A stretch of DNA of 64,000 nucleotides from Oikopleura dioica. Taxonomy: Eukaryota > Animalia > Chordata. A program made the position numbers and the translations under genes. Below are positions 1-63,835 of this stretch, piece after piece; the first letter of the stretch is position 1, and every line of letters starts with the position of its first letter. The notes beneath the pieces are model-generated. The model did not search any database and was not told the origin of the DNA. It saw only the letters and a program-made list of their open reading frames with translations. Location: assembly GCA_907165135.1 (NCBI GenBank), contig OU015566.1:14136001-14200000 (forward strand). The letters are read 5' to 3'.

Positions 1-1042
1 TTTTTACACACTACACGACAATCCTACCGATCTTGGATTGTTTCATGAGGATCGCCAGAAGTATCTGGACAAGCTGGTCCATTACTTCCATACTCCCGGC
101 TGCTCGGAGGTTGCATTGGAGACCATATTGTTTCCACTGGAGCCAAACAAGACGTTCCACAACACCTGCCAGCATCGATTCTGTTTCATGCGATGCCACG
201 CAAATCAGGCTGGATATCGTAGGATGCTGACTGTTCTATCATCTCAGAGAACATTGGAAAAGGTAGCGTCTCGATATTAACACAGGATTCTCCTTTTATG
301 ATGGTATTAACCATCTTAAATTTAGACCGACGACCGATTCCGTGGTTTATCTGCCAAGTACCTTACGATACTGAATAACCCAGTGGAACCAGAAAGGACT
401 GGGCAGACGAGTGCTAATTGTGTTATCGGCCTTGAGCTCCCCACCACTTACTTGGATCGCCTTTTTAAGGGTAATTATCAGTGTTCTTCCAGTTTTAAAA
501 TATCACATTTTACTGATATGACGGGTTAGAGAAGATTATAAAACTTTTATTGTTTAGATATGGGCTCTCCTTTCTACCACGAGAGTAAGCATGTGGCTGC
601 ACAAATGGAGCCTACTCCTCTGCTGAAGGCCTTTCTCAAGTACGGATGGAGCTTAACAGAGCTCAGTAGACTTGGGACAATTTACGGCCGCCGGGTATTG
701 GGAGTGTTTCTTCGTCAGAGTAAGTCGAACAAGCGTCGGAACACACACCCCCGAGTCCCTCTACTCAACAGTCACTTCTTCCCGATGACACCAGACAGCT
801 CACCGATGCTTCTTTCACCTCGACAAAGCCACCCGGTTGGTTTGGATGTCAAGTATCTATCCCTGCTTGAATCTGTAAAGATTCCCGCTGCTCGAAAGTA
901 ATCCTGTACTTGTTCCATGTACCTTCCTGCATGAATAATAAAACAAGCTTTCATCATACACATTAGAGGCAGGTCACTGCCTGCTTTAGTTCAAGACAAC
1001 AGATTTATATGGAAAATCTGTTTTGAATCTTTTTTATTTTGA
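1..1042 (+). CDS. 3' part of an unknown spliced gene (exons <1-262, 326-524, 558-897, 967-1042), converging on retroelement ORF3
   Basis: Three GT-AG introns (263-325, 525-557, 898-966) join four exons in one open frame (phases 0, 1, 2). No recognisable domain. The last exon carries a copy of the element palindrome. Confidence 0.6.
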
Positions 1043-1433
1043 GTTTATTAATGATGATGACTTTTGGTAAAGTTTTTAGTAACACAGGAAGTAACATATT
1101 GGTAAATACACCTAAAGAACAAACAACAGAGTAAATAAAAGGGAATTCGCAGATTCAGCGATTTCGTGAGAAAGTAAGTAATTCCGCTAAAGAAAGTATT
1201 TTTGTTTTGATATGCAGAGATATTGGTGCCCACGTGATAAGGAGAGCGAGAAATTACAGAGGGGGTATTTACAGATAATTAGCTGTTGTGGCTCTCTGCA
1301 AATGATTTTTACTAGTTTTTTTGGTCTTAGAGATTCACGTTATTGGACAGAGGTAAAAAAAAGAACTACAATAAACAAAACAAGTGTTGTACTTGGAGAG
1401 CTTTAAAGAGAACATGATTTGAGGAGGGAAGTA

Positions 1434-3767
1434 TTATAACGATTCCAGTGATGGCGGTTCGTTATGATCTGACTCGTTTTCATCCAACTTTATCCTCTTG
1501 GCATTCAGTTGGTCAGTGAGTGGGCACAGTTGAAGAATTTCATTTCTTATTGCAAGCAGGTCATATTCTTCCCTTTTCCTCTTCTTGGAGCCGTTATGGC
1601 GGGTTGAGTCAGGGTCGAATAGCTTGCTGATCAGTGCATTGCTGACCCACTTAGGGTTTATTTCTTCAGAAGGGCCGTTTTTGTCTCCCAGACTTTTGAG
1701 GAGCACATTCATCCAAAGTTGATCATTCAGAGGTCCTGAATTAAAATTTAGACTCAGGTTAGAGGTAATTGTGCCTTCATTAGAGCACTGAATGATTCTT
1801 AACGATGAAAAAGTGTGCTTATTCCCCGAAAGTTCACTCCATCTTTGTGAATTACCGCTGAGTTGATCATTTAGCATTGACGTTAGCTCGGTTATTTTAC
1901 CAGTAATTTCGTTAACGTCTTCATCGAACATGTCTTTTGCGAACACTCCAATGAACGTGAACGGTAGTAATTTAGCACATTTGATCAATTTTCTCAGCTT
2001 GTCATTAATAGGAGATGAGAGATTTTTCCTATAGGGTTCAAGAGTTTGCTTGAGTTTCTTAATCGCTCTTTTAGTTCCTGATGCGGCCCTTTTCCGGGAC
2101 GTATCAGTGAGGCAAAGCTCAATCTCCCGCCATCCTTTCAGACGCGCTTTAATGATATCTTTGTTTTTATCCCTATCTTGTTGTTCTAAATCATTTTCCC
2201 TTTGTTTAATTCTAGCTTTAAACGATAAAGTGCACACCAAGCACAAGACGTGTGCGCAGTTGGAGTACAAAAGAGCAAGGCTTTCGCCTCCAATTCTAGG
2301 GTTATTGAGAAAGCTTATCGAACGAACTAGACAGGGATGATGGGGGATTTTGAAAATGGAGGTATTAAAGAGACGCCATAGTGCGAGATAGTTGAGATTC
2401 TCAAGATTGGTGGTTAACGCGGAGTGAAGTGAAAAGTAGCGGTGAGAGTACAGAGAGTTATTCGAGTCGCTTGACCACTGACCTTTAACTGCACGCCATA
2501 TTTTTTCTGTACTGATCGACAGGAATGACCGGAACAGTTCGAAGCGTTTGAAGATTTCATCATCGTTTCTAGCTTCATGGCTGGCAAGTTTGGTCGCGTC
2601 GCAGACAGAACAAACGTCAGACAGCCCGCTGTAAACAAATGCGTTAACAAAACTATACAGCGAGGAGCCGAGTCTTTTCTTCAGCACCATATCAAGAGTT
2701 AGGGTCTTCTCAAGGCTCTTCCCAAGGAAGCGGCTCATTTCGGATTCCCAGGTAAAGATTCCATTAGTTCCGCGAACATCTTGGCGTGTTCCCCCACAAC
2801 GTGCGAGTATGGTATCAGTGGTTGATGCAGGCAGCTGCCTTATCTCATATAGGCTTGGATGGTCCATGATGCTGGAGATTGAGTCCACAATTTTCCACTG
2901 GAGATCCAATCCATTCGATACGAAACCACCAGCTTTTTCCACTTCCGCGTAGAGGGTTGAGATCAAACCGACTGTAGCTATTGCACCGGGTCGCATAGTC
3001 AGAGCTTGACAGAAGCGCTTCACTGACCCAGATGATATTGTAATTTCATCAAGAAGTGGCTTGATTTCCTTATCCTTCGCGAGAGGAAGAGCCCATCCAG
3101 CCATCATTGTCGGAGGGATGTTGTATTCACCGAAGATAACACGACTTGCCAAACGATAGAACTTATCCTGTATCGAGGGGAGCTTCCATTCTCTTTGTCC
3201 TTCTGAACGTTCCAAACGATTAAGCGAAGCCGTAGTTTTTGAGAGACGAATTCCTCCGCCTTCTATCCATTTAAATAGTTTGAAGGCTGTCGATACGTCC
3301 AGATTCGTATCTTTCGGCTTTTTGATTCCATCCAGAATAAAGTCCTCGACCTCCTCTTGATCTTTGAATCGATTCGAATAGGTTGCTGCATATTGTTTCA
3401 TCCTATGCGCTAAGGAGTCAGGTACAGAGACGTCGAGACCAAATTCTTCCCTGTCGTCACAGTCTTCCACGAATAAGCCTAAGGCTGTTCCTATCCCGCT
3501 GGGTATTAATTGGAAGTCGTTGAGCCATGTTATGAAACTCGGGTTTTCCAGAAGGGCACGGCTGATAAGGATCATTTTCCGAACCGTGGGAAAGTAGGCG
3601 ACCAGTTCGTCCATATACTTGGCATCAACACCTTCTTGTACACACTTCACTCGTTGTTCGATACATACGAACTCTGAATAAAAATGTAAGTCATGGTAAC
3701 TGGAGTGTTGAATGAGTGTATTATATTCTTTTAATGCAGGCAGCTGCCTGCTTAATTTTTTGCTCAA
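1434..3767 (-). CDS. Retroelement ORF3, unknown protein (777 codons, basic NLS-like C-terminus KKRKR); 5' end probably supplied by splicing
   Basis: 2.3-kb uninterrupted frame 78 nt downstream of the ORF2 stop. No ATG for ~50 codons. Preceded by CTAAT...CCCCCTGCAG acceptor (AG at 3769-3770). Confidence 0.75.
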   Translation of the reverse strand: MSKKLSRQLPALKEYNTLIQHSSYHDLHFYSEFVCIEQRVKCVQEGVDAKYMDELVAYFPTVRKMILISRALLENPSFITWLNDFQLIPSGIGTALGLFVEDCDDREEFGLDVSVPDSLAHRMKQYAATYSNRFKDQEEVEDFILDGIKKPKDTNLDVSTAFKLFKWIEGGGIRLSKTTASLNRLERSEGQREWKLPSIQDKFYRLASRVIFGEYNIPPTMMAGWALPLAKDKEIKPLLDEITISSGSVKRFCQALTMRPGAIATVGLISTLYAEVEKAGGFVSNGLDLQWKIVDSISSIMDHPSLYEIRQLPASTTDTILARCGGTRQDVRGTNGIFTWESEMSRFLGKSLEKTLTLDMVLKKRLGSSLYSFVNAFVYSGLSDVCSVCDATKLASHEARNDDEIFKRFELFRSFLSISTEKIWRAVKGQWSSDSNNSLYSHRYFSLHSALTTNLENLNYLALWRLFNTSIFKIPHHPCLVRSISFLNNPRIGGESLALLYSNCAHVLCLVCTLSFKARIKQRENDLEQQDRDKNKDIIKARLKGWREIELCLTDTSRKRAASGTKRAIKKLKQTLEPYRKNLSSPINDKLRKLIKCAKLLPFTFIGVFAKDMFDEDVNEITGKITELTSMLNDQLSGNSQRWSELSGNKHTFSSLRIIQCSNEGTITSNLSLNFNSGPLNDQLWMNVLLKSLGDKNGPSEEINPKWVSNALISKLFDPDSTRHNGSKKRKREEYDLLAIRNEILQLCPLTDQLNAKRIKLDENESDHNEPPSLESL

Positions 3768-3845
3768 CCTGCAGGGGGTAATAGATTAGTTTGAACCTGT
3801 TTTAGGCAAATTAGTGTCAAATATGCTGTTTGAAAGGAGAGAACT

Positions 3846-6800
3846 TTATCTGTGGTTTGACTTGAAAACTTTGACTTGTAGGGTACTCCATATCCGGTTT
3901 TTGACTTCCCGAAGCCATTTCCGGACGTCAAAGGCCCCAGGGGCGTTTCCCAAGAGTAGTCCTTTTATAAGTTCTTTAGAGGATATTTGATGAGCATGAA
4001 TCGCAACTTGCCTAATGTAATCTTGCATTATCAACGGAGGGATCCAAAGGACTCCCTCCCATCTTAACGGATTTAGCCAGGTCATAATGATGATTATGTT
4101 AATTTCATGATCCATCATTTCACTATCGTAATCAGATGGTTTTTCCTGACGACACTCTTTGCAAGTAAAACTGTAACCGTAATGGATATGTGCTCCTTCA
4201 GTTTCTGCTTTGAGGTTGCTTGGGAAAAAATCGGTTATAAAACTATTTCTTGTAGTTTTTGTTAGTGAATTAAATGGATCAATCGTATTGTAGGGCCAGT
4301 TGTTTTTATTGACCAAATAGCCAAAATGTGACTTGCTTTTTGGGTGTTGCATTCTTATTTCAATGACTCCCGTGTCCAGCAGAGTTTTTGTTTTCATTGA
4401 CATGAATTTAAATAACCTATAATGTTCCCATTCTTCTTTATTCATCATACCGTTAAGTCTATCATTGTCAAATCTGAGTTCTTGTATTTTATCAGAGTAA
4501 AATTGTTTATGCTCGAAAAAGAAGTCTGGTAAATTGCAGATAAATTTACCCGAGTTATCTGTAATTACCAGGCAATCCAAAACAATATCTCTGGCAAACA
4601 TAGGGGTTTTATATCTGTAGATCTTAAAAATGCTATTAATGGCTTGCTTTACTATCATTAGCGCTAGCGTGGGTTGTCTGATCAAGGCTAGTTCTTCAAG
4701 TCCCTTTTCAGGAAGGGCTATGAAACCCTTCCTCTTAATGAGGATTTCTCTGGCTTTTGCAGCCCAGTCGAAATGAGATACGTATGTGCCGTCATTTTTT
4801 TCCTTGAGAATCTGCCAAATGGGCTTAGTTCTCCTGTTCATGGCTGTACTTATATACTGTTTCTGTAGGACATTGAGATCTTCAGCTGAGGGAAAAGGCA
4901 GATAGTCGCTACCATGCAGTAGCGAGCCTCCTAAGAGCCCTCTGGTCATAATTGCTAAAGATTCTCTTGGTATCCCTGAGCTAATATTTTTCAGCCTTTC
5001 AGAAACCGCCCTGAATTTATGTTTTAGATACTTTGAATTCTGGGAGTATCCTAGCTTTCCCTCGTGGGTATCTAGCATCACTCCTAAATATTTTGTCGAG
5101 CTGACAAATTCGATTTTATTTCCTTCAATTATTAAGTGATCTTTAAGTAGGTCGCTGCCTGCTTTCTTGTTGGCAGGGTGACTGACGTCGCCTGCTCCTG
5201 CTTTGGCTAGTTGTTCTGCATTGAAGGCGTTTACGTATTCTTTAACAGAAATGTTTTTAAGCGACTTACTGAAAAGAAGGGCAGTTGTTTTGCTGGATTC
5301 CGTCTTAATCCCTAGTCTCCTGAAGAGCTTGAGCATTCTCGTGGCTGATCTCTGCATGCTGCCTACGGTGTCCATCATGGATCCACCGCAGGTTTTCAGC
5401 AGGCAATCGTCTGCGAATACGGTTATTGATCCTTTCGACTTTGGCACACCGTGTGAGCACTTCCTCTTACCGGAGATAACGATGATGTCGTCGTTGTTGC
5501 CCCATAAGTCGGCATCGCCCTGGTGAATGTCGCTGCACTCCTCCTCGTCTTCGAGTTCCTCTCCATCGTCCGCCGGATCGACTACAAATTCGTCAATTAT
5601 CGGTGCGGTATAGAAAGAAAAGAGAATAGGGGAGAGGGCACTCCCCTGAGGCAGCCCCCACTTGGGGAGCTGCCTCGGGGAGCTTTTGAATCCATTTACC
5701 GTGGCCCTGAAGGATCTTGGTAGGAAGGCTTTAATAAGCCTAACTACGTCCGGCGCCGCCACGCACTCTAGGGCCTCCAACAGCTCTTTGTGCGGGACGA
5801 CGCCGAACGCATTTTTGGCGTCAACTGTTACGCACCCCCACCATTCGTGCCCTTTCGCCCAGTTGGCTTCAGACTCCAACCATGTTTTAGAGTTAACTAC
5901 TCTCTCAACATGATTGATGGCTGCACCGCAAGAATGCAGTGGCCTGAAGCCAAACTGGCTCGCGGGGATTAAGTTCTTGTGGAACAGAAAATCAGTTATG
6001 CTACAGCATATGATTTTCTCCACCAACCCCCCTAAATAAGCCGCTATAGTTATCGGGCGCAATCGCCCGTTGGGCTTAACAAGCGGCGTTACCCGATTTT
6101 CCCTCCAGTCCTCCAGAAACCTACCTTCTTCGATGGCGAGTCTGATCGGATCCAGCATAAGGCTCGAGATTCCAGCGGTCGGCAGACTCTGAATCAAGCT
6201 TTTATTTATCTTTTTCTCATCCTTTGTATCTTTAGAGGAGCTTTTAAATGCTTTGAGAAAGCTGGAAATTTTAGTATTGTCATGAAACTTGAAGCGTTCA
6301 AGACATAATCGCTCGCTTACCGGCAGTTTTTTTCTAGCAGGTGGAGGTTCTGCCTCTTTCGGGGGAACGGAGAGTAGCTGCAAAGAGACGAGCGAGTCGG
6401 CTACAGTTTCAATCTCTTGCTCGATGGACTGTTGGTTGGCGTTTTTCACCACAGCGCCGAACACCTTCCATGACGTGTTGATATCCACGTCACCGATCTT
6501 GTCCACATTTGTCGCTTGTTTCCGTTGGTCCGCAGCCCTTAACCGTACGATAATGGATCTAAGTTTTGTCGCTGAGGCTTTGAGCTTTGCTCTTATCTTA
6601 GATTTTCGCTTGTAACGAAACTGTTCGTTTTCGAATTCGTCTATGAGTTCGCCCAGGGCTATATTGTGGCTTATGTATTCTTTAGTACGGTCACTCTTGG
6701 CTATTCTATACTTATTGGTGCGTACCACAATTTCTTTTTCGGGTCGCATTATTTCGGCATAACGATTTAGCAGCTTATTACCTGTTTCTAGTTTATCCAG

Positions 6801-9254
6801 GCAGGCATCTGCCTGCTTCATGCGGTGGCATTCGAGGGTCAGTTCCATGGCGTGTTTATATCCTTCCTCAAGGGGCAGTGGTTCAGTTATCATTTTCCGG
6901 GTCCATTTCTCATCGTCACCGGTGGACATGTCGATTTCAACATACACTCCGACATGGCCGTCTGTGCCTAGAGTTTGATGCTGTTTGAGTGGATATAATT
7001 TTTCTACCTGGATGTTCCTAGTACAGATATGATCAATTGACGAGCTGATTTTTTTGCCATTCTTCAGGGTTCTCTTGAAGGTGTCGAAGTTGGTCAGTAG
7101 CTCGAAATCGTTGTCTACCAAACATTTATTGATCTCAGATACTTTGGTCTTTTCCCCGGGGCGCGCTCTACACAATTGAGCATTAAAGTCACCCCCGATT
7201 AGTGATTTATCCGTGTAGGTAGACCCGAAAGTCTTAAGATCATCAATAAATCTACTTCTGTCTGTTTTGAAGAATTTATTATAGGCGTCAGTAGAGTTAT
7301 TGCAAAAGTTATAAACTGCGAGGAGATTAAGTTCATTATCATCATAGGTAACTGTTGCTGCAAGGTTTTGCGTGAGTGTTTGAATGTTTGTGATTTTAAA
7401 GTCTGATTTGATAACTATCATAGTAAAAATTAAGTCTTTATGTGCCTCATTCTCAGACTGAACCCCATTTGGAGTGATTATTTTCCATCCATCGGGCCAC
7501 GACTTTTTGTCATCAAAATAGGCTTTACTTGCATAGATTTCCGAAATTATGAAGCATTCCACATTAGGACTATCTTCAATGAGATTGATGATGTCTTTCA
7601 TTCGGATTCTTCCTCCAAGGTTAGAGAGAATAGCTCTAAACTTCCTTGGCCCCTTAATTTTGGAGTTATGCTCACTTACTACTTCTTTGTTACTTCTATT
7701 GGTTTTGTTAAGGCTAGTAGCCCTAATTACTGGAGGTTTAAGTTTATTTATTAGGTCATCGGGGATTCCGCAGTATTTTAAAAATTCCTTTGGGCCCATA
7801 ATGTTATCATCAATTGCAAAATTTGGAGCAATTCCTTTTTTCATTAAAGATGTTACCTTCTCAGTTCTCTTAGTCTCTCTCCAGTTTTTCTTTTCCTCTC
7901 TGTATTTTCTTCGCTGATTTAATTTTTCGTTGCTGTGATCAGAATGAGGCATTGGTGAAGTTATCGAGGGGTTGTCATCATCATCAGAAGAGGCAGGCGG
8001 GGTGCCTGCCTTAGTTGGATCGTTCAGAGTAAGTGGTTCCTCGCGATTTGTAATGCCTCTAGAATCACATGTTATAATATATCTCGGGTTCTCAAGCCAT
8101 GCGTCGAAGCCCGCTCCCCTTACTTCTTTAAATAGTTTATTATTTACTTCATTTAGGAATGTTTTTAGAGTCGAATTATTATTTGATTCTCTATAAATTA
8201 TATTTAGCGGAGTATCCCATTCGAAACCAAAATCAACCATGGCAGTATTTTTAATAAACTCTCTAATCATGCTCTTTCTCGCATTTACTTCCATGTCACT
8301 TACTCGGCAGACTACAGCGTAATGCGGTTTTCCATTCGCGAGAGGGGATCGGATTGCTGACTTGTCCCAAGCTTGGATGTGATATAATCTCAAATAGTTG
8401 GAAGTTGCGAGAACAGCCATCTGGAGTTTGATGAGACGAATGTATGATAGCCAGTTGAAGTTGCCGAAGTCATCGCTGCTCAGGCCTTTGATGCTGGTGA
8501 TGAGATTGATGTGCATCTCATTCCTTGGACAAGGGATGTAAGCGATGATTGCTTTCCCCGAGCCGGTTAGAAACAGAGCACTTACATACTCCAGGTCATT
8601 CAACTTGACATTGCACATTCTTATTTCGGCCAGGAAGTCGATCCATCCTTGGTCGGTAACGTCGATTCCAAACTTTTCTTGTTCTTCACGGTTTCCCGCC
8701 ACTTCCTCCAGGTATTTGGCAATATGAGAGATGTGTGAGACAATCCTCGCCACCCAGTGTCTCGTAGCCAAATTGGATTGGCCTTGAGACACCTGCGAGT
8801 GTCTGACTAAGTATCTCTGGATCTTATGGAATTGCTTGTCTCCTTCGTTATTCATTTCGGCAAGCATCTCCACCGATTGTATGCTAGCAGGTTTCGCTAC
8901 CCGAATAAACTCTTTTGTACTCTCGTACAACGTGACTGTTTTGTCAAGTTCAGGTAATAGTTCTATGGCCTCCAAGGGTTTAAGACGACCATTCTGACCC
9001 GGCAGGATTATCGCTCCTTTATTCAGCTTGTCGGCTCCTTTATATTGGAAGATCTTGGTCCTGCCTCTTTCTGGGTCTGCCTCATCGTACTCCGTCATCG
9101 AATCCTGTACGGTGTCTTGGTCGATACCCAGAATGCTGTCCTTGTAGATATCTTCGGGGTTTGATGCTTGCGAACTATTGTCTTCCATCCTTTGGCCTTC
9201 AATGGTTGAAACTCGGGAATCAATGGATTCTTCCGTAGCTTCTGATTCGGACAT
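3846..9254 (-). CDS. Retroelement ORF2: ~535-aa N-terminal extension, APE endonuclease, reverse transcriptase
   Basis: APE motifs LSNLGG, ISEI, AVYN, GGDFNA, SIDHI, TDGH. RT motifs LVKPNG-RPITI, QFGFR, DAKNAF, GLPQGSALSP, FADD, KYLGV. Confidence 0.95.
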   Translation of the reverse strand: MSESEATEESIDSRVSTIEGQRMEDNSSQASNPEDIYKDSILGIDQDTVQDSMTEYDEADPERGRTKIFQYKGADKLNKGAIILPGQNGRLKPLEAIELLPELDKTVTLYESTKEFIRVAKPASIQSVEMLAEMNNEGDKQFHKIQRYLVRHSQVSQGQSNLATRHWVARIVSHISHIAKYLEEVAGNREEQEKFGIDVTDQGWIDFLAEIRMCNVKLNDLEYVSALFLTGSGKAIIAYIPCPRNEMHINLITSIKGLSSDDFGNFNWLSYIRLIKLQMAVLATSNYLRLYHIQAWDKSAIRSPLANGKPHYAVVCRVSDMEVNARKSMIREFIKNTAMVDFGFEWDTPLNIIYRESNNNSTLKTFLNEVNNKLFKEVRGAGFDAWLENPRYIITCDSRGITNREEPLTLNDPTKAGTPPASSDDDDNPSITSPMPHSDHSNEKLNQRRKYREEKKNWRETKRTEKVTSLMKKGIAPNFAIDDNIMGPKEFLKYCGIPDDLINKLKPPVIRATSLNKTNRSNKEVVSEHNSKIKGPRKFRAILSNLGGRIRMKDIINLIEDSPNVECFIISEIYASKAYFDDKKSWPDGWKIITPNGVQSENEAHKDLIFTMIVIKSDFKITNIQTLTQNLAATVTYDDNELNLLAVYNFCNNSTDAYNKFFKTDRSRFIDDLKTFGSTYTDKSLIGGDFNAQLCRARPGEKTKVSEINKCLVDNDFELLTNFDTFKRTLKNGKKISSSIDHICTRNIQVEKLYPLKQHQTLGTDGHVGVYVEIDMSTGDDEKWTRKMITEPLPLEEGYKHAMELTLECHRMKQADACLDKLETGNKLLNRYAEIMRPEKEIVVRTNKYRIAKSDRTKEYISHNIALGELIDEFENEQFRYKRKSKIRAKLKASATKLRSIIVRLRAADQRKQATNVDKIGDVDINTSWKVFGAVVKNANQQSIEQEIETVADSLVSLQLLSVPPKEAEPPPARKKLPVSERLCLERFKFHDNTKISSFLKAFKSSSKDTKDEKKINKSLIQSLPTAGISSLMLDPIRLAIEEGRFLEDWRENRVTPLVKPNGRLRPITIAAYLGGLVEKIICCSITDFLFHKNLIPASQFGFRPLHSCGAAINHVERVVNSKTWLESEANWAKGHEWWGCVTVDAKNAFGVVPHKELLEALECVAAPDVVRLIKAFLPRSFRATVNGFKSSPRQLPKWGLPQGSALSPILFSFYTAPIIDEFVVDPADDGEELEDEEECSDIHQGDADLWGNNDDIIVISGKRKCSHGVPKSKGSITVFADDCLLKTCGGSMMDTVGSMQRSATRMLKLFRRLGIKTESSKTTALLFSKSLKNISVKEYVNAFNAEQLAKAGAGDVSHPANKKAGSDLLKDHLIIEGNKIEFVSSTKYLGVMLDTHEGKLGYSQNSKYLKHKFRAVSERLKNISSGIPRESLAIMTRGLLGGSLLHGSDYLPFPSAEDLNVLQKQYISTAMNRRTKPIWQILKEKNDGTYVSHFDWAAKAREILIKRKGFIALPEKGLEELALIRQPTLALMIVKQAINSIFKIYRYKTPMFARDIVLDCLVITDNSGKFICNLPDFFFEHKQFYSDKIQELRFDNDRLNGMMNKEEWEHYRLFKFMSMKTKTLLDTGVIEIRMQHPKSKSHFGYLVNKNNWPYNTIDPFNSLTKTTRNSFITDFFPSNLKAETEGAHIHYGYSFTCKECRQEKPSDYDSEMMDHEINIIIIMTWLNPLRWEGVLWIPPLIMQDYIRQVAIHAHQISSKELIKGLLLGNAPGAFDVRKWLREVKNRIWSTLQVKVFKSNHR

Positions 9255-9283
9255 TTCCGATTCGGAGGTTTCCTCCTCTTCAT

Positions 9284-12200
9284 TTAAGAGTTCCTTTTCT
9301 TTTGTTCCGATGAGCTTTTCATTTCGCCAGTCAGCAGAGTATTTTCACCGGCCATTTCGATGTCATGTCCGAAAGTTTCGTGGATTGAAAGTTCCATCAT
9401 CTGCTTTTCGTTCTGGGAGTTAGATGGGTTTCGTTTGCGGCGCTTGTCATCTGGTAGAAGCCCCAAAATCGAGTCTTGAATTTGTGAGCGGCTTTCACCC
9501 ATATCTCGAGCAAAAATGGAACCAATCTTGTGCGCTTTTCCATTTACCTCAATTCTGTCAATTGTATTTGGGTCTGTTTCGCAGCCTCCGAGCCTGGCTA
9601 CTTTTGTCATCGTTGATTCTTGAGATCCGTAGGTAGCTGCCTGCTCCAAAGCTTTGTACACTCCATTCGAGTCGTGGACTCCAGAATGTTTGGAATACTT
9701 TTCTCGTTGAGCTTGGCTCAGATTCTCCCAAACCCAAGTTTTAATATCGCCGAGTTGGGATAAGATCCCGATGTTGAAAGCAGTTTGATTCACGTGTTGG
9801 CTTTTTTGCTGCTCCGCCAGGTTCGCAATTTCGACCTCGTGAACCTCCTGATTATTTTTCATATCTTGAACAGTTGTGTCCAGGTTGACGAAGCGCCTGC
9901 ATTTCCCTATTGTCGTGTCAATTGCAGATTGAAATTTTGGCATTTCACATGCCACCGAAACTGCGTTTGTGACCATTTTAGCCTTCGCGAGCTTCTCCTT
10001 GTCACCACCGAAGCCTTCAAGCGCCGAAGCTGTCATCGACGGTCCACATCTGTCTGCGTGCTTATTCTGCTCCTTTATTAACTTTTGTATAAGCTTGTCT
10101 GTGGCAATAGAGTATAGTGGGTTCAAGGAGCACTGAAAACCAACAGCTTCAGCCGCCTCAGTCAGTGTTTGTAGCATTGGGTGAATGATGCCCTTTCCTA
10201 TCACTCGTCTTTGCTCAGAGCTTATTGGGACGAATTGATAGGTGAAATTGGAGCCCATTCGTTGCCTTTCCAAGCCGGCGTCTACTCTTCCGAATTTCAT
10301 CTTCTTGATTGCGAAGTCAAAGATACGTTTAAACGGAATCACTCCAAGAACAGAAGAGTTCTGGTGAAATGTAAGCAGCTTTAGGTATTTGCCTCTCTGA
10401 AACTCCCAGCCGCGGCTGACAAGCTTCCTGACAACATCGTAGAAGTCTCCGGAGTGCGTGAGATTGCATTCATGAACGAACTCTCCATCCTCTTCTTTTT
10501 GTGTCCAGCATGTAGCCATGAATGGGAGTTTATATGCGTATTTCAGAGGCTCGGATGCGGCCATGGCGTTGCCGCCAAAGTGGACGAAGATGGCGAAGGC
10601 TCTGAAGGTTTTAAATACGATGCCTTTGACCGTGAAATTTCTAGTTTCATCTGTGTAGCGGAATCCATGCATCGTGGTAGTTCTCCCTTGCTTGTCATTA
10701 ACGATGGCGTCGCGGATATCGGCCGGTCGAATGTTGCACTTTGTGAATATATCGATCAGGACTTTCCCAGTAGCGTTTAACAGAATGTGTCCAGCGTATT
10801 CGACAGACCTCCATCTTTCCGGATAATGATCCAAGTCCATGACCAGAGGTCTTGTGGATGCCGCTAGCCCTTCCCGAAAGTCCACCATCGCTCTCCACCA
10901 GCAATCATCAAGATCAGACGAGGGTTCTCTTAATTTGAGCTTCTCATATATGATCGATTTACTGGTTGGGTTTTTATCCAAATCTTTTCTGGATTGTGTG
11001 AGGTATTCTGTATTCGGATTTTTCTTTTCCAGCGTTGGTTTGACCTCGTGCATGATAAGTGGAGTTTCGTCTGGAGTGAGATCATCAGGTTCAAACTTAT
11101 CCTGCGAGTCTTCATGAAGGACTGCCTCCAGAGAAGTTAGTGGGCCATCATCTTGATATTTGTCCCATTTTTCAGGTGATTTTTCTGCTTCAATTTTCTT
11201 GAACTCGTCCGATAAATCAACGAATTTGGCGTTCTTCGGTCGCGGAACAGAGTCTTTCTTGGCTTTTTTATTTGATTGAGATGTCGGATCGGCAGGCAGC
11301 TGCCTGCCTTCTTGAGGCAGATTCTCTTCATCTCTTGCTCTTTTCTTACTAGGGGTGTCATTATCATTTCTAGTGGCGTTTCTGGCATTGCCTTGGTTAT
11401 TTCTATGATTCGAGGACCGTTCATTGTTTTCATCACGCTGATTCCTATTCGATCTGCCGCGGCCTCTTCCACGACCACCACCACGATAGCCCCTTCTCGG
11501 GCCACGATTGAATTGGCGCGTGTTAGCTCTGCCCCTATAGACACGATAGTCATCCCCATAGCCGGATCCACTATTAAAGCTATTTCCGTTGGAGTAGCTA
11601 TCGTCGTAGCCTTCGTCGTAGTAATCATCGTTTTGGGAATATCCTCGTCGATCGTCATACCAGTCGTTATAGCGATCGTTATAACTCCCTGACCAGTTTC
11701 CGCGATTATTGTTGCTCCAGTTACGTCCGCCCCAACCTCTTCTACCTCTGCCATTTCGTGAGCGGTTACCTCGGCCACCGTTTCTACGATTGCCAGTTTG
11801 TCCCCGCTGTTCGCTACGTTCCCGACTGGAATCACGAGGGCGTTCGTTGGCGCGTTCGTAGTTCCTTTTCGGGGACGGCATGTTTGATCCGATTTCTTTG
11901 CTGAACAGAGTATTTATTATTACATGTTTTCCGGATCTCGCTGCTGTTCTTACAGCAGATTGAGTCCTATATGATGATGTTCTTAACGCAAAGTCTAATA
12001 GGCTGAGGAGAGGAGAGAGATAAGTTTGGCTGGGCAGGCGATAAGTGCAGAAGTTACAGCGAGTTTCCCAGATAATGGATATTCTTGGTAGATTTTCATT
12101 TTGCAACGAGCATTCTCTTCTTTCTTTAGACGGCTTCTTTTTATTTTGTATTTTCTCTCTTTGTTGATTTTGCCGGTAATTTTTCCCATCCTCGAGTATG

Positions 12201-12502
12201 ATTCTGAAAACCGAGGTTTTATTAACAGACACGTATTCTATAAACTTACCCAGAGCCGGGAAAATTTGCAAAATTGTGTCTGAAGAATCAACACTGCTTG
12301 GAATAATGTGTGAGTTGACTGCTGCGACACTGAAAACATACGTTTTATTAACAGATTGGCTTAGAAAGTCTACAATAGTTCCGAAGTCCTTATTGTCAAC
12401 TTCCTGCGGGACGTACTTGCAGAGAAAGATCTCATTCTGTCCCAGCTTCTCTGAAGCATCGCACAGTTTTTGTTTGCCCTCGGGCATACATTCTTTAGTC
12501 AT
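9284..12502 (-). CDS. Retroelement ORF1, RG/RGG- and N/D/Y-rich nucleic-acid-binding protein; true start may be ATG 11881 (MPSPKR)
   Basis: Long ORF upstream of APE-RT with RGRGRG repeats and a coiled-coil-like C-terminal part. No CCHC knuckle seen. TTCAG acceptor ~20 nt before ATG 11881. Confidence 0.85.
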   Translation of the reverse strand: MTKECMPEGKQKLCDASEKLGQNEIFLCKYVPQEVDNKDFGTIVDFLSQSVNKTYVFSVAAVNSHIIPSSVDSSDTILQIFPALGKFIEYVSVNKTSVFRIILEDGKNYRQNQQREKIQNKKKPSKERRECSLQNENLPRISIIWETRCNFCTYRLPSQTYLSPLLSLLDFALRTSSYRTQSAVRTAARSGKHVIINTLFSKEIGSNMPSPKRNYERANERPRDSSRERSEQRGQTGNRRNGGRGNRSRNGRGRRGWGGRNWSNNNRGNWSGSYNDRYNDWYDDRRGYSQNDDYYDEGYDDSYSNGNSFNSGSGYGDDYRVYRGRANTRQFNRGPRRGYRGGGRGRGRGRSNRNQRDENNERSSNHRNNQGNARNATRNDNDTPSKKRARDEENLPQEGRQLPADPTSQSNKKAKKDSVPRPKNAKFVDLSDEFKKIEAEKSPEKWDKYQDDGPLTSLEAVLHEDSQDKFEPDDLTPDETPLIMHEVKPTLEKKNPNTEYLTQSRKDLDKNPTSKSIIYEKLKLREPSSDLDDCWWRAMVDFREGLAASTRPLVMDLDHYPERWRSVEYAGHILLNATGKVLIDIFTKCNIRPADIRDAIVNDKQGRTTTMHGFRYTDETRNFTVKGIVFKTFRAFAIFVHFGGNAMAASEPLKYAYKLPFMATCWTQKEEDGEFVHECNLTHSGDFYDVVRKLVSRGWEFQRGKYLKLLTFHQNSSVLGVIPFKRIFDFAIKKMKFGRVDAGLERQRMGSNFTYQFVPISSEQRRVIGKGIIHPMLQTLTEAAEAVGFQCSLNPLYSIATDKLIQKLIKEQNKHADRCGPSMTASALEGFGGDKEKLAKAKMVTNAVSVACEMPKFQSAIDTTIGKCRRFVNLDTTVQDMKNNQEVHEVEIANLAEQQKSQHVNQTAFNIGILSQLGDIKTWVWENLSQAQREKYSKHSGVHDSNGVYKALEQAATYGSQESTMTKVARLGGCETDPNTIDRIEVNGKAHKIGSIFARDMGESRSQIQDSILGLLPDDKRRKRNPSNSQNEKQMMELSIHETFGHDIEMAGENTLLTGEMKSSSEQKKRNS

Positions 12503-12888
12503 TACTCAGCGATTGCTGAGCTGATGCTGCAGCTTTTGACGCAGGCATCTGCCTGCGTCATGCTTGATATGCCTTAGTCAGCACTCGCTGATTGGTTACT
12601 CCAGTGGTGCCTTGGGCAAAATTTGATTAATTTCTTAGAAATTGGTAATTAAGTGGTATTAAATTAAATGAGAAAACAACCCCGAACCCCGCAAGCAGGA
12701 TTGGACTTCTGTGTACCACTTCCAGGGCGTTAACTGTACTCCAGCTATCAAAATAGCAACTGGATTTTTTTTTGAAAACGTGTTTTCTCTGGGATTTCGA
12801 AGTGAGAAGTGAAAAGTGAATGTTGAGAGCGAGAGGGGGCGCCCTAACAACCGCCCCACATCCAATTTTTCGAGACCCTGGTCCAGAC

Positions 12889-13090
12889 CTTTTGTAGCGA
12901 GCCAAACACAAGAGGTCGCTACGTTGTATGGATTGATCTCTTCGAAAGTTGCAAAGTCGGAGAAATCGTAGACGTGGTGATAAATTTGCAGTGCGGAGCA
13001 GGTCACTTTTGGCAGAAGCTCGAGCTTGAGCGAGATGTCGCGGATGAAACGGCAGATTTCGAAGTGCGTTATTTTACTTGTGTCTGTCAT
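12889..13090 (-). CDS. CCNQ: Cyclin Q (FAM58A/cyclin M)-like, exon 1 only; remainder not in window
   Basis: HFEICRFIRDISLKL...TCSALQIYH...NPYNVATSCVWLATK matches the cyclin-Q N-terminal box. GT donor at 12888. Confidence 0.65.
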
Positions 13091-17239: not shown

Positions 17240-19743
17240 TTATGAAACAGGTTTTTCTTGAGAACTTGGCTGGAGCATCGTCGCTCGGTTACAAGCAACA
17301 GTGATTTTTTCCAAGGATTTCGCGACCTTTTCACACTTTTCGTGAGTGTCATATCTACAGCTTTTCGTTCTACAGAGGCAAACATGCTTTGCTCCTCGCC
17401 GTGCCCAATACTGATCGCCATAGTTTAGCGTGAGCTCTTCTCCTTTCTCAATTCTTCGCGTCGCGAAAAGAGCGATGGAAGGAATCCTGTAGTCATCATG
17501 GGTGCGGATGATTCGCACAGGGACCAGGTTGTGCTCGCAGGAGTGGTTGATGAATCTGAAAACGCTAGATAAGGCGAAAATTTACTTTTTTACCTCGATG
17601 AGTTCGCAAACTGCGACTGATCCAAAAAGTAGCTTCTTCCTCCAAAAGTCGATATTTTCATCATGAATTCCTTCAACACAGTCGTTCCGCTTTCTAGCGC
17701 AATAACTTCGCCAATCATCGGCATCACATATTCCCCTGCCTTTATTTCCGTCGTCGTTCTGAGCGACCATTCTTTGAGCAGCTCTTGGTTTCGGAATATT
17801 TCAACTTGCTTGGGGTCGATATTTTTCAGATGCAAGTTTTTGCACAGTCGAAAGTCGCAAGAACAAAGCTCGTTGCAGTCATAAACAGCCGTAGTTGATC
17901 CTACAAGAATTTGAAAATAAGATAAATTCGACTCGAGTTACCTTGATATCGAGCATAAACATCCAAATCCAAAGTTCTATCGCTCTTGAACAAGCCTCGG
18001 TCAGAATTCGACCGACAAACACAGTTCTAGTAGAAAATTGAATAATCAAAGCTTGAAACTGTACTCTTACCATTCCACTACAGTCTCCCGAACACTGGCA
18101 AGACACGGCATCAATAATATCTCTCTTGAATCTCAAACCTCTCAGTTTCGTCCTTGTTATCATCATGTACTGAAATCAAAATAAACAAGCATCAAAATAA
18201 TTTCGACTACCGTAAATGATGGAAACTTCAAATCATCGATTCCGTTGATCACGTGGACGGGGAAGCTTTCTTTTCCATTTGCAACATCGTGTATCACCAT
18301 CAGTCCATTAAGCCTTTGATATTTTCGTGACTCGACATTGCAGTTTTCTTCAATTTGCTGAAGAAGCACCTTCGCGCGGCCAGTTGCGATATCTACCGGG
18401 TTCTTCTTCTGCATCGCGTGTAAATTTCGATCGTAAAATTGCAAGAGAACTCCAAGAGTTTGAACGGCTTTGTTTTCTTCCAACTGAGCAGCATAATAAA
18501 TCGGAGACGCAGAATTTTGATCCCACGTGCACAAAAGCTGTCGGTCTTTTTCCAGGAGAATTTTGCAGCGCTCTGCGTATCCATATTGAGCTGCCCAATG
18601 AAGAACGTTCTTTCCCGCTCGATCTGGGATGTAGAGATCTTTTGGATTGCAACTTTCAAGGAAGTATTTGAATACTTCCATATCTGGATTTTCCAGCGCC
18701 CAGTGAATGCAAGTAAATCCTGTTAAATCTTGAACAGGGATGTTTTCCGCGTTCACGAGCAATTTAACTATCGGCCGAGAGCAATTTTGAGCTGATAGAT
18801 GGGCCGCGGTTCGTCCATTGTCATCCATTCGTTTCACATCGACGCCAGATTTCAAGCAATACTGGACGGAACGAAGCTCATTGCTTTGCACAACATCGAT
18901 GAGGATTGAAAACTTGCCTTCTTCGCCAAATCGCTTATTCGGCGAAACTCCAAATTTATGAAAGACTTCCGCCAGATCAAGTCGCTTCTTCTTGATGCAA
19001 TAATCAAAAATAGAAATCCCAGCAATGGAATGAAGGATGGATTCGACCGGACTCTTCAAGATTTCAGCAATTTTTTCAACATAAGAAGAGTCGATCGCTC
19101 GCCTGACTTGTTCAGCCGTAGAAGTTTTAGTAACAGGACTTATTTTTATATAGTGCGTCAAGATTTCCGCCATGTATTGGTTTTCCACCGTCGTAAATTT
19201 GAACGGCTGGTATTTGATCTTGTAGCTTTTAATCGCAGCTGAAGGTCTTGTTTTTGGCGTCCTTCGTTCCCGCATGAATTTTTTCTCACAATGAGGGCAT
19301 TTATCATGCTCCTTTTGAAGCTGAACGCAGTCTGCATGTGTTCGATGGCCATCGGTACATTCTTGATAGTCGAGCAACTGACAGCGCATTCCACATTGCG
19401 GGCAGAACTGATGCTTTTTCAGCTGAGCCTCGCAGCTTTCGCAGAGCTTGATGAAGAAAGACGCGTGTTCTGTTGGGCGAAAGGAGATTGTTGAGTTGGA
19501 AATTGGATTGGAACACATGTTGATGGAATCGTCGGTGATTTCGATGGAGCAACATGTTTTTGAAGAAAAGTCTGTGGTGTGAGGAATCAAGCAGCTGCAG
19601 TTGGTTCTTTCGGAAAGAATATCGTTCATTTTAGCTTTCTTTGTTGGAGGTATTTTAACTTCGACTTCTGCCACAACAACGCCATTGCTCAGAGACTGAT
19701 TTGAGCTTGAGTCCGACTTTGTGACTGCCATTCTGAAACGCAT
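17240..19743 (-). CDS. EHMT1: G9a/GLP-like H3K9 methyltransferase (Cys-rich region, ankyrin repeats, pre-SET, SET, post-SET), multi-exon
   Basis: Ankyrin repeats (GRTAAHLSA, GKNVLHWAA), DVANGKE, FINHSC, ELTLNYG..YW, CLCRTKSCR. EHMT1 vs EHMT2 cannot be resolved. Confidence 0.85.
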
Positions 19744-29523: not shown

Positions 29524-32004
29524 TTATAAGACGGCTTCTTCGTTGACTTCCCATTGCTGGTAAATGTCATCGGGTCGGCAGTCTATAAATCAAGCATAAG
29601 GAAGGGTTTTTAAATTGATTGTCTACCTTCAATAGTTAAGGGTCCAGTGGGTTTATCTGCATCATTGCTTCTGGTCAGACATTTGCCTTTGTAACGGAAT
29701 GTTCCATCTGTATCGAGATTGAATTTCCATGCGTTCGAAGGGCTGTTGACTCTTTCGCATGCATGGATGTTCATCTTTGAGTTGTCACTGAAAGCAGAAA
29801 GTTTGATTATGCAAGCATCAATACATCGAGCGGACTAAGGAATCAATTCTACGAGATCATCACAATCAACACGACCGATTAGGAAAGCTTCTATTCAAAT
29901 AGAAACGTGCGTAAATTATCAACAATTGCGTTTACCCAGTTATTGAGGAAAACCATTCCTCAACTTTCAAATTCTTTATGATTTGAATCGTTGTCAAGCC
30001 ACTAATAAGCAAAAACACCACTATCAAAACCAAACTTTCTAGTGCATACCTCGCTGGATAGAGACATTGAAGATTTTGAGCAATAAAACCACCAGCGTGG
30101 ATTCTGAAGAGTTGGTTTCCTCCTTGTTTGTGACAATACCAGGACTCTGCGGGGCCATCATTATCTTAACAAATGTCTTGTCAACATCTAATGAAAAAGC
30201 TTTTGCACCTTTGTGGCCCATAGAATCGACGCAGATGTTAGACCCTTTGCCTCTGATTTCGCCCCAAGCAAGGAGCTCATTTGGAGCGTCGTACATGTCT
30301 GTGATTCCATAAGCGACTTCTTCCATCAGCCAGGTGAAGTTGTGGGGACAGTGATCGTGTCGGAACTTGACTTGTTCGCTAACATCACCGTAGTCGAGCT
30401 TTTGCAACTCCGGTCGGTTCCAGTAAAAGTACTGAAATAAGTGTTATCAATAGAGGTAAAGGAAGCGTTTTGTACCTTTGCCCAGTCGTCCCACCAAACT
30501 TCGATAACTCTTCTGTAATTTCTGAAAGAAGGATTTGAAGGAACATATTCTGGTGGTGGATTTCCACCCCATCCTTCAAGTCTGTAGACGTGACCGACTC
30601 TTGAGCATGGAACAAAGTACACGCCTCCGCCGCACATCCAAAGTTTATAAGAGATTTCATACTGCTCCCCGCCCCAAATCTCCAGTCCTGGGTCGTACAT
30701 TCCAACATTGTTAAAATGCTCTCTGTTGATGGCGAAAAGTCCTCCAGCCATGGCTGGCGATGGATACATTTCGGTAGCATGCTTGAGCTTCTCTGACTCT
30801 TTCTTCGGAAGTGGGTATCTCTTCCACAAAAGTTCCATTCCCATCCTCCTTGGGCGCGTCCGTGGCTATCTCCACCGGCTTGGCCACTGAAAGTGTAACG
30901 CTGGCCGTCAATGGAGTCGATAAGTGGGACTGTTGAAATTCTATCGTTTCTAGCAATGGGCGCAATAAGTGGCGGCAGCCAATTGTATCCAGCCTCACAA
31001 TGAGCATCGAGGAAGACAAGGACTTCAAAAGTAGCATGCTGAGCGCCAATTGAGCGCGCTCGAATGAGGCCCTCTCGTCGAGCGTTTCTGTAAAGCTTCA
31101 CTTTTCCGTTCCATCGCTTGATGTACTCTTCTAGAGGCTGGCCAAGATGGGGTTTGTCTTTGATGATGGATCCGTCGTCAATGATGACGATTTCACCGAG
31201 AAGTTCTGGAGGAGTTCGATTAACGACTGAGTGGAAGGTTCTTACGAGAGGTCCCCATCCTTCATTGTGGAAGACAACGACGACAGACACCATTGGAAGC
31301 TTTTCTGGGTAGTCGATTGAGACGCATTCCTTGTCACGAAGATCTTTGGGCAATCGGTCCATGGAAATTTTATCGGAATTGACCAAGTTGAAGCCGAATT
31401 CTTTGATGATTTCTTTGACATGCTCTTCTTCTTCTGGCAGAGTATGAACAGATGCTCCTCGCTCTCCTGGACCATCATGGCCAGTCTCATCAATGGGAGG
31501 ATTGTGCTCCCAATTGCCATCTTTTCCGTCAGGTCGGTAATATGGCTCTGGAACATTTTCGTCTATTCCTCGACCAACCAGAGTCACAGTTCGTCCATCC
31601 CAGGTCTTCATCGTTTCTGGTTTGCGACCAGAATTTTTAACAACAGTTGGAGCTTTTCGTCTCTCGTTGAAATCAACTTCATTGCCTCCAATGTGTGGAA
31701 ACTCGAGATCAGACTCGTGTCGATCAGGGAGAACTTTTCGGTCAATATCAAGAGGGTCTTTTACTTCCTCTTTCACTGCGCCGAAATCCGGATATTCTTT
31801 GTCCTTGGCTTCGGAATGGTGCTTTGCATGTTTTTTCGCTTTCTTTGCCTGGGAAAAAATATGATATGAAATGATCCTACTAATTACCTCTTTTTGTTCA
31901 GAATCAGAATGCGGGAACGCGAACGTGTACAGTAGACAAGAAACAACAAGGAATACGACGACGAGGCGAATCGCAGAACCCGTCCGGATTCGGACTGTTC
32001 TCAT
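29524..32004 (-). CDS. GALNT7: Polypeptide GalNAc-transferase, GALNT7-like copy B (apparent 1-nt frameshift at 30828-30831)
   Basis: Same motifs as copy A: FHNEGWG, FLDAHCE, MAGGLFA, WGGEQ, HVYRLEGWGGNPPP, lectin ending QQW. Confidence 0.85.
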
Positions 32005-54608: not shown

Positions 54609-55088
54609 GTATTGTAATCACGCATAAATAACAATGGTAATGGGAATATTCCCGAGCACGCGCAATTACAATACTGTGGTAGAGAAATGTCTTTCTAAGG
54701 ATAAGGACTGGGCAGTATGTAGGGCGTGTGCTCGTTTACCCTACTTTTACTGCTTATTTCAGGGATGGTGGGCGGGTGAGTCTTTTGATTCAGCTAGGAG
54801 TCTTATTGGTAATGCTTCTGCTGAGAAAAAGCCTCTATTTTAAATTTCTCGATTTAGGTTTTAGCTGCAGGCTAAGAACCTTTAGAGTGAACCTGCGTGA
54901 TTCCGGTGCACCCGCTCGAAACCAGGTGCTCTCGGGCGCCTTTGTCACCTTTTGCTGCGTCCTGGGAGTCCCTGCCATTGGTTACTAGGCTCTCCTGCCG
55001 CGTTCTATTTCTAGCGGGCTGCTAATCCCTTTGTCCTAGATTCGTATTGTAATCACGCATAAATAACAATGGTAATGGGAATATTCCC
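54609..55088. repeat. Split direct repeat terminus: B2 54609-54653, putative A2 54654-55043, B1 55044-55088
   Basis: Identical 45-mer GTATTGTAATCACGCATAAATAACAATGGTAATGGGAATATTCCC occurs twice, separated by 390 nt. Confidence 0.9.
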
Positions 55089-55198
55089 TCCCTACCATTC
55101 TCGTTATTCTCATCAATCGATTGCTAAGGGATTCTTATTTTTTTGGCAGGAAAAAGGGAGAATCTTTTCTTTGTGATGCAGGAATCTTTTATGCTCTT

Positions 55199-56372
55199 TC
55201 AGGACTCAGTTGTTTTCGGCTTCTTTTGCTCTTGCTTGGCTTCTTGTGGTTCTTGTGGTGTCTGAAACCTTTATGATTGAACCCTAATTGTTTTGCCACT
55301 CTTACCTGAAGATGGTTATCCTCGTTGTCGCTTCCGTTTCGCTTTCTGGCTCTTGATTTCGCGACGCTGACGGGCGCTCCCAAGTTACTGCATTCGAGCC
55401 AGCATCTTTCGTAGTAATCTGGCATTGAGCTTCCTGGAGCCCATCGGAGCGTGTGCGCGAGGGTTTGCTGAGAAAGGCCTGAGCGGCGTCCCTCGATGTA
55501 GAAGCTGACTCTGCCCGAATGCGCGGAGACCTGAACAGGAGTCTTTTAAGTGTGTGGATTCTAAAGTCTTTGTACTTTTTTCGGGAGTTCCGCTTTTGCT
55601 CCGTAGCGGGCCAGGTAGTCCGAGGCGATTCTGGTGTGACCTTCTAGATTCTTGAAGACGAGTCCTTAAGGAGATGGTCAGATAATTTCTTAGAAGCTTC
55701 GCTAGCATTTTTACCTGAATCTCGGTCTCTTAACTGCGCTCTGAGTTCCAGCGCCAGCGGGACGCCGTGTTTCATCTCCATGGGGATGGTTAGAGTCTCC
55801 ATGCGCTTGCAAAATGGGTCCGTCTTGCTGCTTCGAATGTGGAATCGCCAGAACTCTTTCCCCTCTTCCTTGACGATCTCGCGGTCTTCGATTCTGAGGT
55901 TGAGTGCCTCCTTCATTCTAGCGCCCGTGGTGAAGCAGATGAAAAAGGCGATGGCTGCTTCTCTTGGCTTTGGCTTGTTTGTCCTCATGAGCTCCTCCCA
56001 CAGCCGGATTGCTTCTGGTTCGTCCACAACTTCCGCTTGCTAGAAGGTTTGAAACTACGATGCGAAAGGCGAGTTTACCTTGGGGTATTGGAGGGTTTCT
56101 GCTGCTGATTCACGGGCTCTGTGTTCGCACCAGGTCTTGATCTTCCTTTTTTGTTTTGCTGTGAGAGTCTTCTTCATCTGGGATGCGACTACATCTTGAA
56201 TCGTTGTGATTCCTTTTTCGTACGCATAAGCCTTGAGCGTTGGTCTTGTGAGGAGTCTGTCGAGGAAGTGTTGGATCACGTCGTCGATTTCCGCCTCATT
56301 GTAGTTGAAAGTGGCCATTGCTTCTGCCACCTCCCAGTGCTCTAGAAGATTCTTAAAGTCGAGCCAGGTCAT
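55199..56372 (-). CDS. Tyrosine recombinase (~331 aa); exons 56372-56079, 56039-55715, 55664-55576, 55530-55306, 55261-55199
   Basis: After splicing, catalytic residues R (TGAR), K (SKTD), HSGR, W (LRW) and Y (PDYY) are all present. Last intron is less certain (unspliced stop at 55189). Confidence 0.9.
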
Positions 56373-56590
56373 GAGTCTAAACGGTGATTTTTTAGGGTTT
56401 GGATTCGGAAAACCTAGTTTTTTTTTTTTTATTAAAAAAGGGGCTCTTGGCCGGATTGCGGCTGGGGTTTTTTTTTTTTAGTATTTTGAGACAGAATCTA
56501 AATGAAGAAACGCGCACTATAAGGGGCTAATCCCCGTCGTGGAGTGAAGTATTTTCGAAGATGGTTCTAGATTATTTTTTTTTTTGATTC

Positions 56591-57881: not shown

Positions 57882-58001
57882 TTTTTCAGTGATTCCGAGT
57901 CTAAAATGGAATTTGAGAGTCAAAATTTCTGTTTCTTTGTGTGATTTGGCCGAATGGGGAATCTGAGAGAGAGAGGAGAAAAACAGTATAAAGAGTCTTG
58001 A

Positions 58002-61720: not shown

Positions 61721-62112
61721 CTATTTAGAGTCTTTTTTTTTTATGTTTTGAGAAGTTTATTTATTTTGAGTGACTCTTTTATTTTCTTACGGGCCCGAGC
61801 CTGATTCTGACGGGAGTTTAAAGCCTTCCAAATCCGAATCTGAACTTTGACTCTCCATTCTGAACTTTGATTCTATTTTTGGTGTTTCTTGGTTTTTGAT
61901 TTTCTTTTCCAGCTTTGGTTTTTAAGAGTTTCTTATTCTTTTTTTTAATGCTTTCTAAAGGAAGAGGCGAGGATCTTCTGATGAGATCGAAATTATTTAT
62001 TATGAACAGCTTTTCTGTAAATTTGGAAAAATGAAGAAAGGGTAAGATTCTGTTTCAGTGATTTGAGGCATAAAAAGGCAGTTTGAGTCTAAGAGTCTGG
62101 ATTTGGCTTCTT

Positions 62113-63604: not shown

Positions 63605-63835
63605 CGAGGAATCTGTTGATTCTGAATTGAGACTGAAAAGGTGTCTAAAATTAAGGTTTTCTTTTAGCCCTTATTTATCCTGGATTTTTGAGATCAGGAC
63701 TGATTCTATCTTTTGAATTAGTTAGTGTGAGTCAGTTTTCTTGGCTCAGAGATTTTCCCACGCTAGCTTGCGTGGTTTAGTTTTATGGCGTTCTTTTTTT
63801 TTGAGAGTTTTTAGTTTTGAATATCTAAAATTACT

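Follow-up and report, generated by a model that had tools for sequence, protein, structure and literature searches.

The window, a stretch of 64,000 nucleotides, belongs to chr1 of the Okinawan Oikopleura dioica OKI2018_I69 (PMC8008620), whose genome comprises 64.3 Mb, and its left part is occupied by an intact, giant LINE that is present once in this genome. The full element measures 18,750 bp (G000:C4:14130070-14148820) and runs 5,930 bp to the left beyond the window, up to an AATAAA and a poly(A) tract at window position -5930 (minus strand); a transcript of "over 11 kb", as quoted in the first-pass annotation, thus falls short of the 18.75-kb unit. Its gene content consists of three open reading frames and a predicted gene of 14 exons on the opposite strand (Table 1). 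The element sits within a hAT-type MITE of ~920 bp, which carries an 8-bp target duplication of its own and whose right terminal repeat is split by the LINE; the remainder of this host MITE corresponds to L001:3230-4069. Uninterrupted MITE copies define both junctions of the LINE, with a duplicated target of only 0-2 bp. A LINE target-site duplication of 7-20 bp is absent by comparison with the empty MITE, and none was found for the related elements L020, L022 and L024. Target-site duplications are not universal among LINE clades. The 3' end is formed by poly(A), neither LTRs nor TIRs are present other than the TIRs of the host MITE, and a truncated relative of 4 kb exists. An interpretation of the whole 19.6-kb unit as a hAT cargo transposon was rejected, because the LINE interrupts the right TIR and the ~920-bp MITE occurs intact elsewhere. 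Several insertions adjoin very GC-rich targets without clear target duplication (L001:4058-4070; L015:3036-3045; L022:27162; L023:13936), GGCGCGC being the target in both chr1 copies. The 5' end of the element opens with repeated TCACTT (window 12800-12820, minus strand), which we take to resemble the initiator of an internal promoter.

The window further contains host genes, among them one with an EHMT/G9a-like ankyrin and Cys-rich region (18163-19743) and a family 2 glycosyltransferase (30385-32004). Another retroelement, strongly strand-skewed and with its RT frames interrupted, lies at about 55000-64000; GANTC reaches 74-80 occurrences per 4 kb there, a density 3-4 times that of the remaining window (about 20).

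Table 1. Features of the giant LINE and its surroundings. Positions refer to the window unless another sequence is named; negative positions lie to the left of the window.
Feature	Position	Strand	Basis or remark
Poly(A) non-LTR element, part within the window	1..12820	(-)	junctions fixed by empty-site MITE copies
Split-off end of MITE right TIR, then 8-bp TSD GTCCAGAC	12820..12888	.	MITE comparison
ORF1, 1072 aa; conserved core about aa 480-850	9284..12502	(-)	no Pfam/PDB match
ORF2, 1802 aa; N-terminal domain without assignment, AP-endonuclease-like domain, RT	3846..9254	(-)	
ORF3, about 777 aa; candidate binder	1434..3768	(-)	behind 3' splice acceptor
ORF3 acceptor sites	3768-3775; approximate: L020:18680, L022:17760, L023:3900, L024:16170	(-) in the window	
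Predicted antisense gene, last exons	1..900	(+)	script gene model; 14 exons, starts at -4514, about 1510 aa
Last antisense exon, 113 aa; candidate binder	558..900	(+)	kept in all full-length relatives examined
Dyads left of the window	about -5657, -4184, -3408, -2128, -1258, weak -266	.	motif scan
Dyad between ORF3 and antisense gene, 67 bp past antisense stop	967..986	.	
Dyad in ORF3 (aa 309)	2825..2844	.	
Dyad at ORF3 5' end	3734..3753	.	perfect 16-mer
Dyad in ORF2 (aa 1365)	5145..5164	.	
Dyad in ORF2 (aa 813)	6799..6818	.	
Dyad in ORF2 (aa 416)	7991..8011	.	only strong one with 5-nt spacer
Dyad in ORF1 (aa 953)	9627..9646	.	
Dyad in ORF1 (aa 399)	11290..11309	.	perfect, 18 bp
Dyad in 5' UTR, 35 bp before ORF1 ATG	12537..12560	.	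24 bp
GGTAGGCGCGCGCCAACC sites	G000 C1:9532188, C1:13723451, C1:14672334, C2:2896804, C4:1818127, C4:6108212, C4:7295355		

The RT domain of ORF2 was recognized as Pfam RVT_1 (E 3.5e-21). In the endonuclease-like region the motifs GDFN, DHI and DGH are visible without a Pfam match in ORF2 itself, which aligns at E 2e-5 to a relative whose own Exo_endo_phos matches are sub-threshold. Neither Pfam nor PDB nor Atlas offered a match to ORF1, ORF3, the antisense domain or the N-terminal part of ORF2; homology searches with ORF2 and ORF3 (90% database) returned only the element's own annotation. A homologue of ORF3 with an invariant CxxC occurs in every full-length relative examined; its assignment as a hAT transposase or a RING protein was rejected, since homologues do not preserve the CxH/CxxC pattern near aa 510. 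ORF3 has no early ATG and is preceded by a pyrimidine tract and AG in five of six elements, so that its expression from a spliced or trans-spliced subgenomic RNA appears likely. The predicted antisense protein is 38% identical to its counterpart in a 5'-truncated relative (L015:3045-7100, or C4:2163045-2167100) that has kept only the first half of the gene; two read contigs of low depth match the window identically and are unspliced across two predicted introns, and two RNA runs (X5 and X8) contributed no aligned read. The domain encoded by the last exon, which alone served as query in the database searches with the antisense protein, is the only antisense part retained in all six full-length elements. 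Two AlphaFold models of this domain were of low confidence (pLDDT 43-45), and a fold search was likewise uninformative.

In the Bergen assemblies, five relatives (L020-L024) carry RT, ORF3, antisense exons and poly(A) in identical order. In L020, ORF1 and ORF2 are fused into one frame of 2872 aa, and the antisense gene (L020:21009-21728) has shrunk to about 175 aa and retains nothing but the conserved last-exon domain. The L022 element stands head-to-head with a second, more distant LINE ORF (L022:1031-4912, minus strand). At L023:13410-13510, about 420-500 bp ahead of the poly(A), several CRE-like TGACGTCA palindromes are clustered upstream of the antisense gene. In a phylogenetic tree, the giant elements separate with support from another Oikopleura group. 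With Odin of Oikopleura the element shares the poly(A) tail, the combination of an endonuclease-like domain and RT, and the restriction of close relatives to Oikopleura records or marine metagenomes (PMC4122922, PMC8008620), whereas its size of 13-19 kb across the clade, ORF3 behind a splice acceptor, the predicted spliced antisense gene and the array of dyads described below set it apart from the Odin descriptions in the papers examined. By elimination, the element is probably Odin or a member of a sister group (PMC4122922).

The special feature of the giant LINE is a palindromic motif that returns along its whole length. A 16-mer had been listed at nine positions in the first-pass annotation, and a scan with up to three mismatches recovered eight of these (969, 2827, 3736, 5147, 6801, 9629, 11292 and 12541; expected 0.07), while the ninth, at 7993, has perfect arms around a 5-nt centre and spans 17 nt instead of 16. 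The eight quoted gaps, the extensions to 18 and 24 bp and the differing reading frames were reproduced upon recalculation. The sites had been placed in all three ORFs, which applies to seven of the nine, those at 969 and 12541 lying outside. Position 969 does not mark the start of the array, given that six more sites precede the window on its left side; the next 34 kb past these held none within three mismatches. On the right-hand side, the reported lack of the motif was borne out, with no site within three mismatches at 13-64 kb of the window. Genome-wide, six sites match within one mismatch, five of them in the giant LINE and one in the truncated relative.

Altogether about 15 dyads extend end to end along the 18.75 kb with a mean spacing of 1.3-1.4 kb, the outermost being located about 260 bp from the 5' end of the element and about 290 bp from the poly(A); because the dyads reach nearly both ends, the array is a property of the entire element. 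For the 14 curated sites the mean gap amounts to 1400 with a CV of 0.30, a regularity attained in none of 20,000 simulations (P<5e-5), and the weak fifteenth site (-266) fills the largest gap, which lowers the CV to 0.26. The full unit is composed of two 8-bp arms, each arm being a doubled 4-mer, and in the giant LINE the arm reads AGGCAGGC, with a spacer of 4 nt in 13 of the 14 curated sites. The symmetry continues into this spacer, the first of its four nucleotides being A in 12/13 and the last T in 10/13. Lone half-sites are not enriched in the giant LINE (21 vs 22.8 expected), and no tandem repeats were found in window 1-12820. When the amino acids were held fixed and synonymous codons drawn at random (2000 runs), a mean of 0.83 ORF sites and a maximum of 4 were obtained against 6 observed (P<0.0005), in agreement with the earlier statement that protein sequence does not explain the motif. 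The array is selected and is neither a chance product nor a by-product of the proteins.

The exact 16-mer is absent from the relatives, and variants emerged there only by de novo discovery. In relatives at 30-40% RT identity, family-specific variants of WGGHWRGY-N4/5 plus inverse were found along the whole element. L020 possesses the arm TGGTTGGT with a 5-nt spacer in 11/11 cases, 11 sites occurring within 12.9 kb (null 0.6; spacing CV 0.49, P=0.01) and no dyad in 15.7 kb of flank. L021, L006 and L007 have the arm AGGWAGGT, likewise with a 5-nt spacer. The N5 pattern derived from L021 and the 3.9-kb pieces L006 and L007 was applied out of sample and gave seven perfect matches genome-wide, all of them outside the pieces used and inside two related chr2 LINEs, in one of which sites recur about every 0.9-1 kb (the chr2 arrays being placed by the coordinates of the pattern search). 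Less certain are the dyads of L023 (CTGACC-N3-GGTCAG, z 3-9 against shuffles), of L024 and L029 (TGCCAYC-based, z up to 5) and of L022 (weak GGGAGC dyad, z 2-3), which were obtained post hoc with 5-12 shuffles per width; the fixed L024 pattern failed to transfer to L029, in which a de novo search gave a related half-site. No dyad of the WGGHWRGY type was seen in the 3.5-3.9 kb examined of L008, L009 and L010. The third intron of the truncated relative L015 harbors a cluster of overlapping dyads directly after the donor. A near-identical 18-mer, GGTAGGCGCGCGCCAACC, which fits the 4-nt-spacer dyad, occurs at seven other dispersed sites; it probably belongs to another small repeat, possibly a non-autonomous partner.

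Once the sites had been mapped on the ORF2 alignment, their positions mostly differed between families, with two shared columns, and the array therefore persists by gain and loss of sites. At a fourfold divergence of 8%, L026, a second copy of the L020 family, differs from L020 in only 4 of 144 arm positions. Three of these changes exchange A and T at the degenerate position, and the fourth moves towards the consensus. The dyad array is thus conserved in kind across the LINE clade and family-specific in spelling.

Whether such dyads are read as duplex DNA or as hairpins was left undecided in the first-pass annotation, which had offered sites for a dimeric protein next to RNA hairpins; the dimer fits best, and the RNA option is disfavored. 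Across 41 sites of six elements, the arms pair no better than within-family shuffles (242 vs 240 +/- 3.9, P=0.36), and A-A and T-T arm mismatches are common. The spacer length is fixed within each family and the spacer sequence is free in the 5-nt families, and Rfam returned no match for window 1-13000. The fixed spacer, the missing covariation, the inconsistent RNA strand and the lack of excess lone half-sites together favor a dimer site in double-stranded DNA, the pattern expected of a two-fold symmetric protein. Single-strand hairpins in RNA or first-strand cDNA, read by ORF1 or ORF2, might serve periodic RNP loading, export, RT re-engagement or second-strand priming when a template of 13-19 kb is copied, and the centre of 4-5 nt would suit a loop. 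The folding energies span about -20 to 0 kcal/mol, several dyads reaching -11 to -19 kcal/mol but many only -3 to -6 kcal/mol. In the giant LINE, G-T pairing on the cDNA strand could accommodate 12 of the 15 transition mismatches (antisense:sense 12:3), and those of L021 and L007 lean likewise (3:1); L020, however, leans to the opposite strand (4:8), and a strand bias also follows from an A-rich coding strand. In keeping with a hairpin function, the outermost sites are found 100-420 bp from the element ends. Since sequence-specific hairpins also show little covariation, its absence only weakens this reading, which we nevertheless consider unlikely.

Further explanations fare less well. A host DNA-binding factor, such as a germline activator or a boundary protein, might have been recruited by the elements, and an E-box (CAGCTG or CATCTG) is indeed contained in many giant-LINE dyads as well as in the L022 and L024 candidates. 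It is missing from the 5-nt-spacer families, though, half-site and spacer vary between families even within one genome, and exact matches are nearly absent from host DNA, which would not be predicted for a factor with targets of its own; recruitment of this kind is accordingly rated as improbable. Splice control has also been considered, in which a 5' splice-site mimic and a U1-like complement would provide U1 protection against premature polyadenylation without splicing. The sense strand of the LINE holds 28 AATAAA, and the commonest half-site, AGGTARGT, fits the donor consensus, its inverse resembling the U1 5' end. Moreover, dyads begin at antisense intron donors in the giant LINE (-3408, -1258), in the truncated relative, where the intron concerned is the orthologous intron 3, and twice in L021. 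On the other hand, GT is found in only 1-2 of 15 sense arms of the giant LINE, the predicted U1 pairing is weak (about -4.7 kcal/mol), lone half-sites, which would suffice for U1, are not enriched, and the dyads of L023 and L029 bear no resemblance to donors. A donor is also the cheapest place for a site: the overlap is read as economy because the donor supplies one half-site for free and the intron accepts the other arm. Splice control is hence seen as a quite improbable function. Least probable of all is that the array represents a neutral residue of RT fold-back, micro-insertion footprints or codon and amino-acid bias, an explanation that is largely refuted. The tetrapeptide RQLP does recur, so that the proteins carry part of the dyad signal, but the spacing is even, the sites occupy all three frames as well as introns and UTRs, and neutrality is contradicted both by the recoding result and by the fact that families at 30-40% RT identity have kept the array while its positions turned over.

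The preferred reading thus remains that of double-stranded DNA sites for an element-encoded dimer, which would act as evenly spaced self-tags against silencing, and we regard its chances as about even. The symmetry and fixed spacer length of the dyads suggest that some protein binds them. As they are near-absent from host DNA and divergent between families, the reader is presumably encoded by the element itself, most likely as the C-terminal domain of the antisense protein or as ORF3, with ORF1 and the ORF2 N-terminus as further candidates. Of these, ORF3 and the ORF2 N-terminus had already been named in the first-pass annotation, whose list did not include the antisense protein. The last antisense exon qualifies because it is kept in all six full-length elements and makes up nearly the whole gene in L020, where the array is full. 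It can be envisaged that a dimeric (or tetrameric) protein of this origin would bind the dyads as double-stranded DNA, that protein and dyad would co-evolve such that each LINE family acquires its own site, and that, through gain and loss of sites, a dyad would lie no farther than about 1 kb from any point along the 13-19 kb unit. The bound protein would tag the copy as self and keep transcription running end to end, through local anti-silencing or elongation licensing. Among the jobs conceivable at the DNA level, anti-silencing is suggested by analogy with the VANC/VANDAL system treated below. The silencing to be opposed would be of the H3K9 type; in O. dioica, mobile DNA carries H3K9me2/3 in testis, and DNMT1 and DNMT3 are lacking (PMC5240408).

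Related arrangements are known from other systems. The subterminal transposase or TnpA sites of DNA transposons are likewise repeated, have an element-encoded binder and also serve autoregulation, yet they are clustered at the ends, whereas the LINE dyads cover the whole body evenly and the LINE has no transposase. Chi, KOPS, uptake sequences and HIP1 are motifs situated inside ORFs at a codon or amino-acid cost and with positional turnover, but they are distributed genome-wide in bacteria, in contrast to the LINE dyads, which are family-specific and private to one mobile-element clade. With the SFE elimination motif of rhabditid nematodes the dyads share a degenerate palindrome with GGC/GCC; SFE measures 29 bp, separates GGC and GCC by 3-4 bp and marks break sites (PMC13060919), and an identification of the dyads with this motif was rejected, as the organism is Oikopleura.

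Closest in kind are VANC21 and VANC6, TE-encoded proteins that bind family-specific self motifs in VANDAL Mutator-like transposons of Arabidopsis (PMC5735166). Both systems have a short motif that is repeated inside the TE, differs between related families and is scarce elsewhere, and in both the TE brings extra genes of its own (PMC5735166). The VANDAL motifs comprise 8-9 bp in non-coding tandem repeats, while single, spaced dyads of 20-21 bp across coding DNA are found here, in an animal retroelement as opposed to plant Mutator-like transposons. Among the accessory proteins tested against Pfam and PDB there was neither a VANC homologue nor a Mutator-like transposase, the element being of the RT type. 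Our best guess is that the array would work like VANC/VANDAL and yet fail to be a member of that system. More tentatively, and with the balance somewhat against it, a clade of 13-19 kb LINEs may write a private family barcode into its own genes at intervals of about 1-1.5 kb and encode the reader, possibly antisense, as a self-licensing system that elements of such length would require for transcription or copying, and that would be unrelated to VANC and to every retroelement cis signal described so far.

Literature searches, the original Odin paper apart, produced no description of such a dyad array, which is apparently undescribed. In the papers searched, and to our knowledge, no LINE is known to bear sequence-specific sites of self-recognition throughout its body. 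If a protein of the element reads the dyads, this would be the first analogue of VANC-type anti-silencing in an animal retroelement, and it would assign a testable job to the conserved ORF3 or to the antisense gene. The families, with at least four site variants, would then constitute a natural panel of matched protein-site pairs in which to follow the change of specificity. Along these lines, the array would help to explain how a LINE of 19 kb can remain active in a genome of 64 Mb that is poor in transposons.
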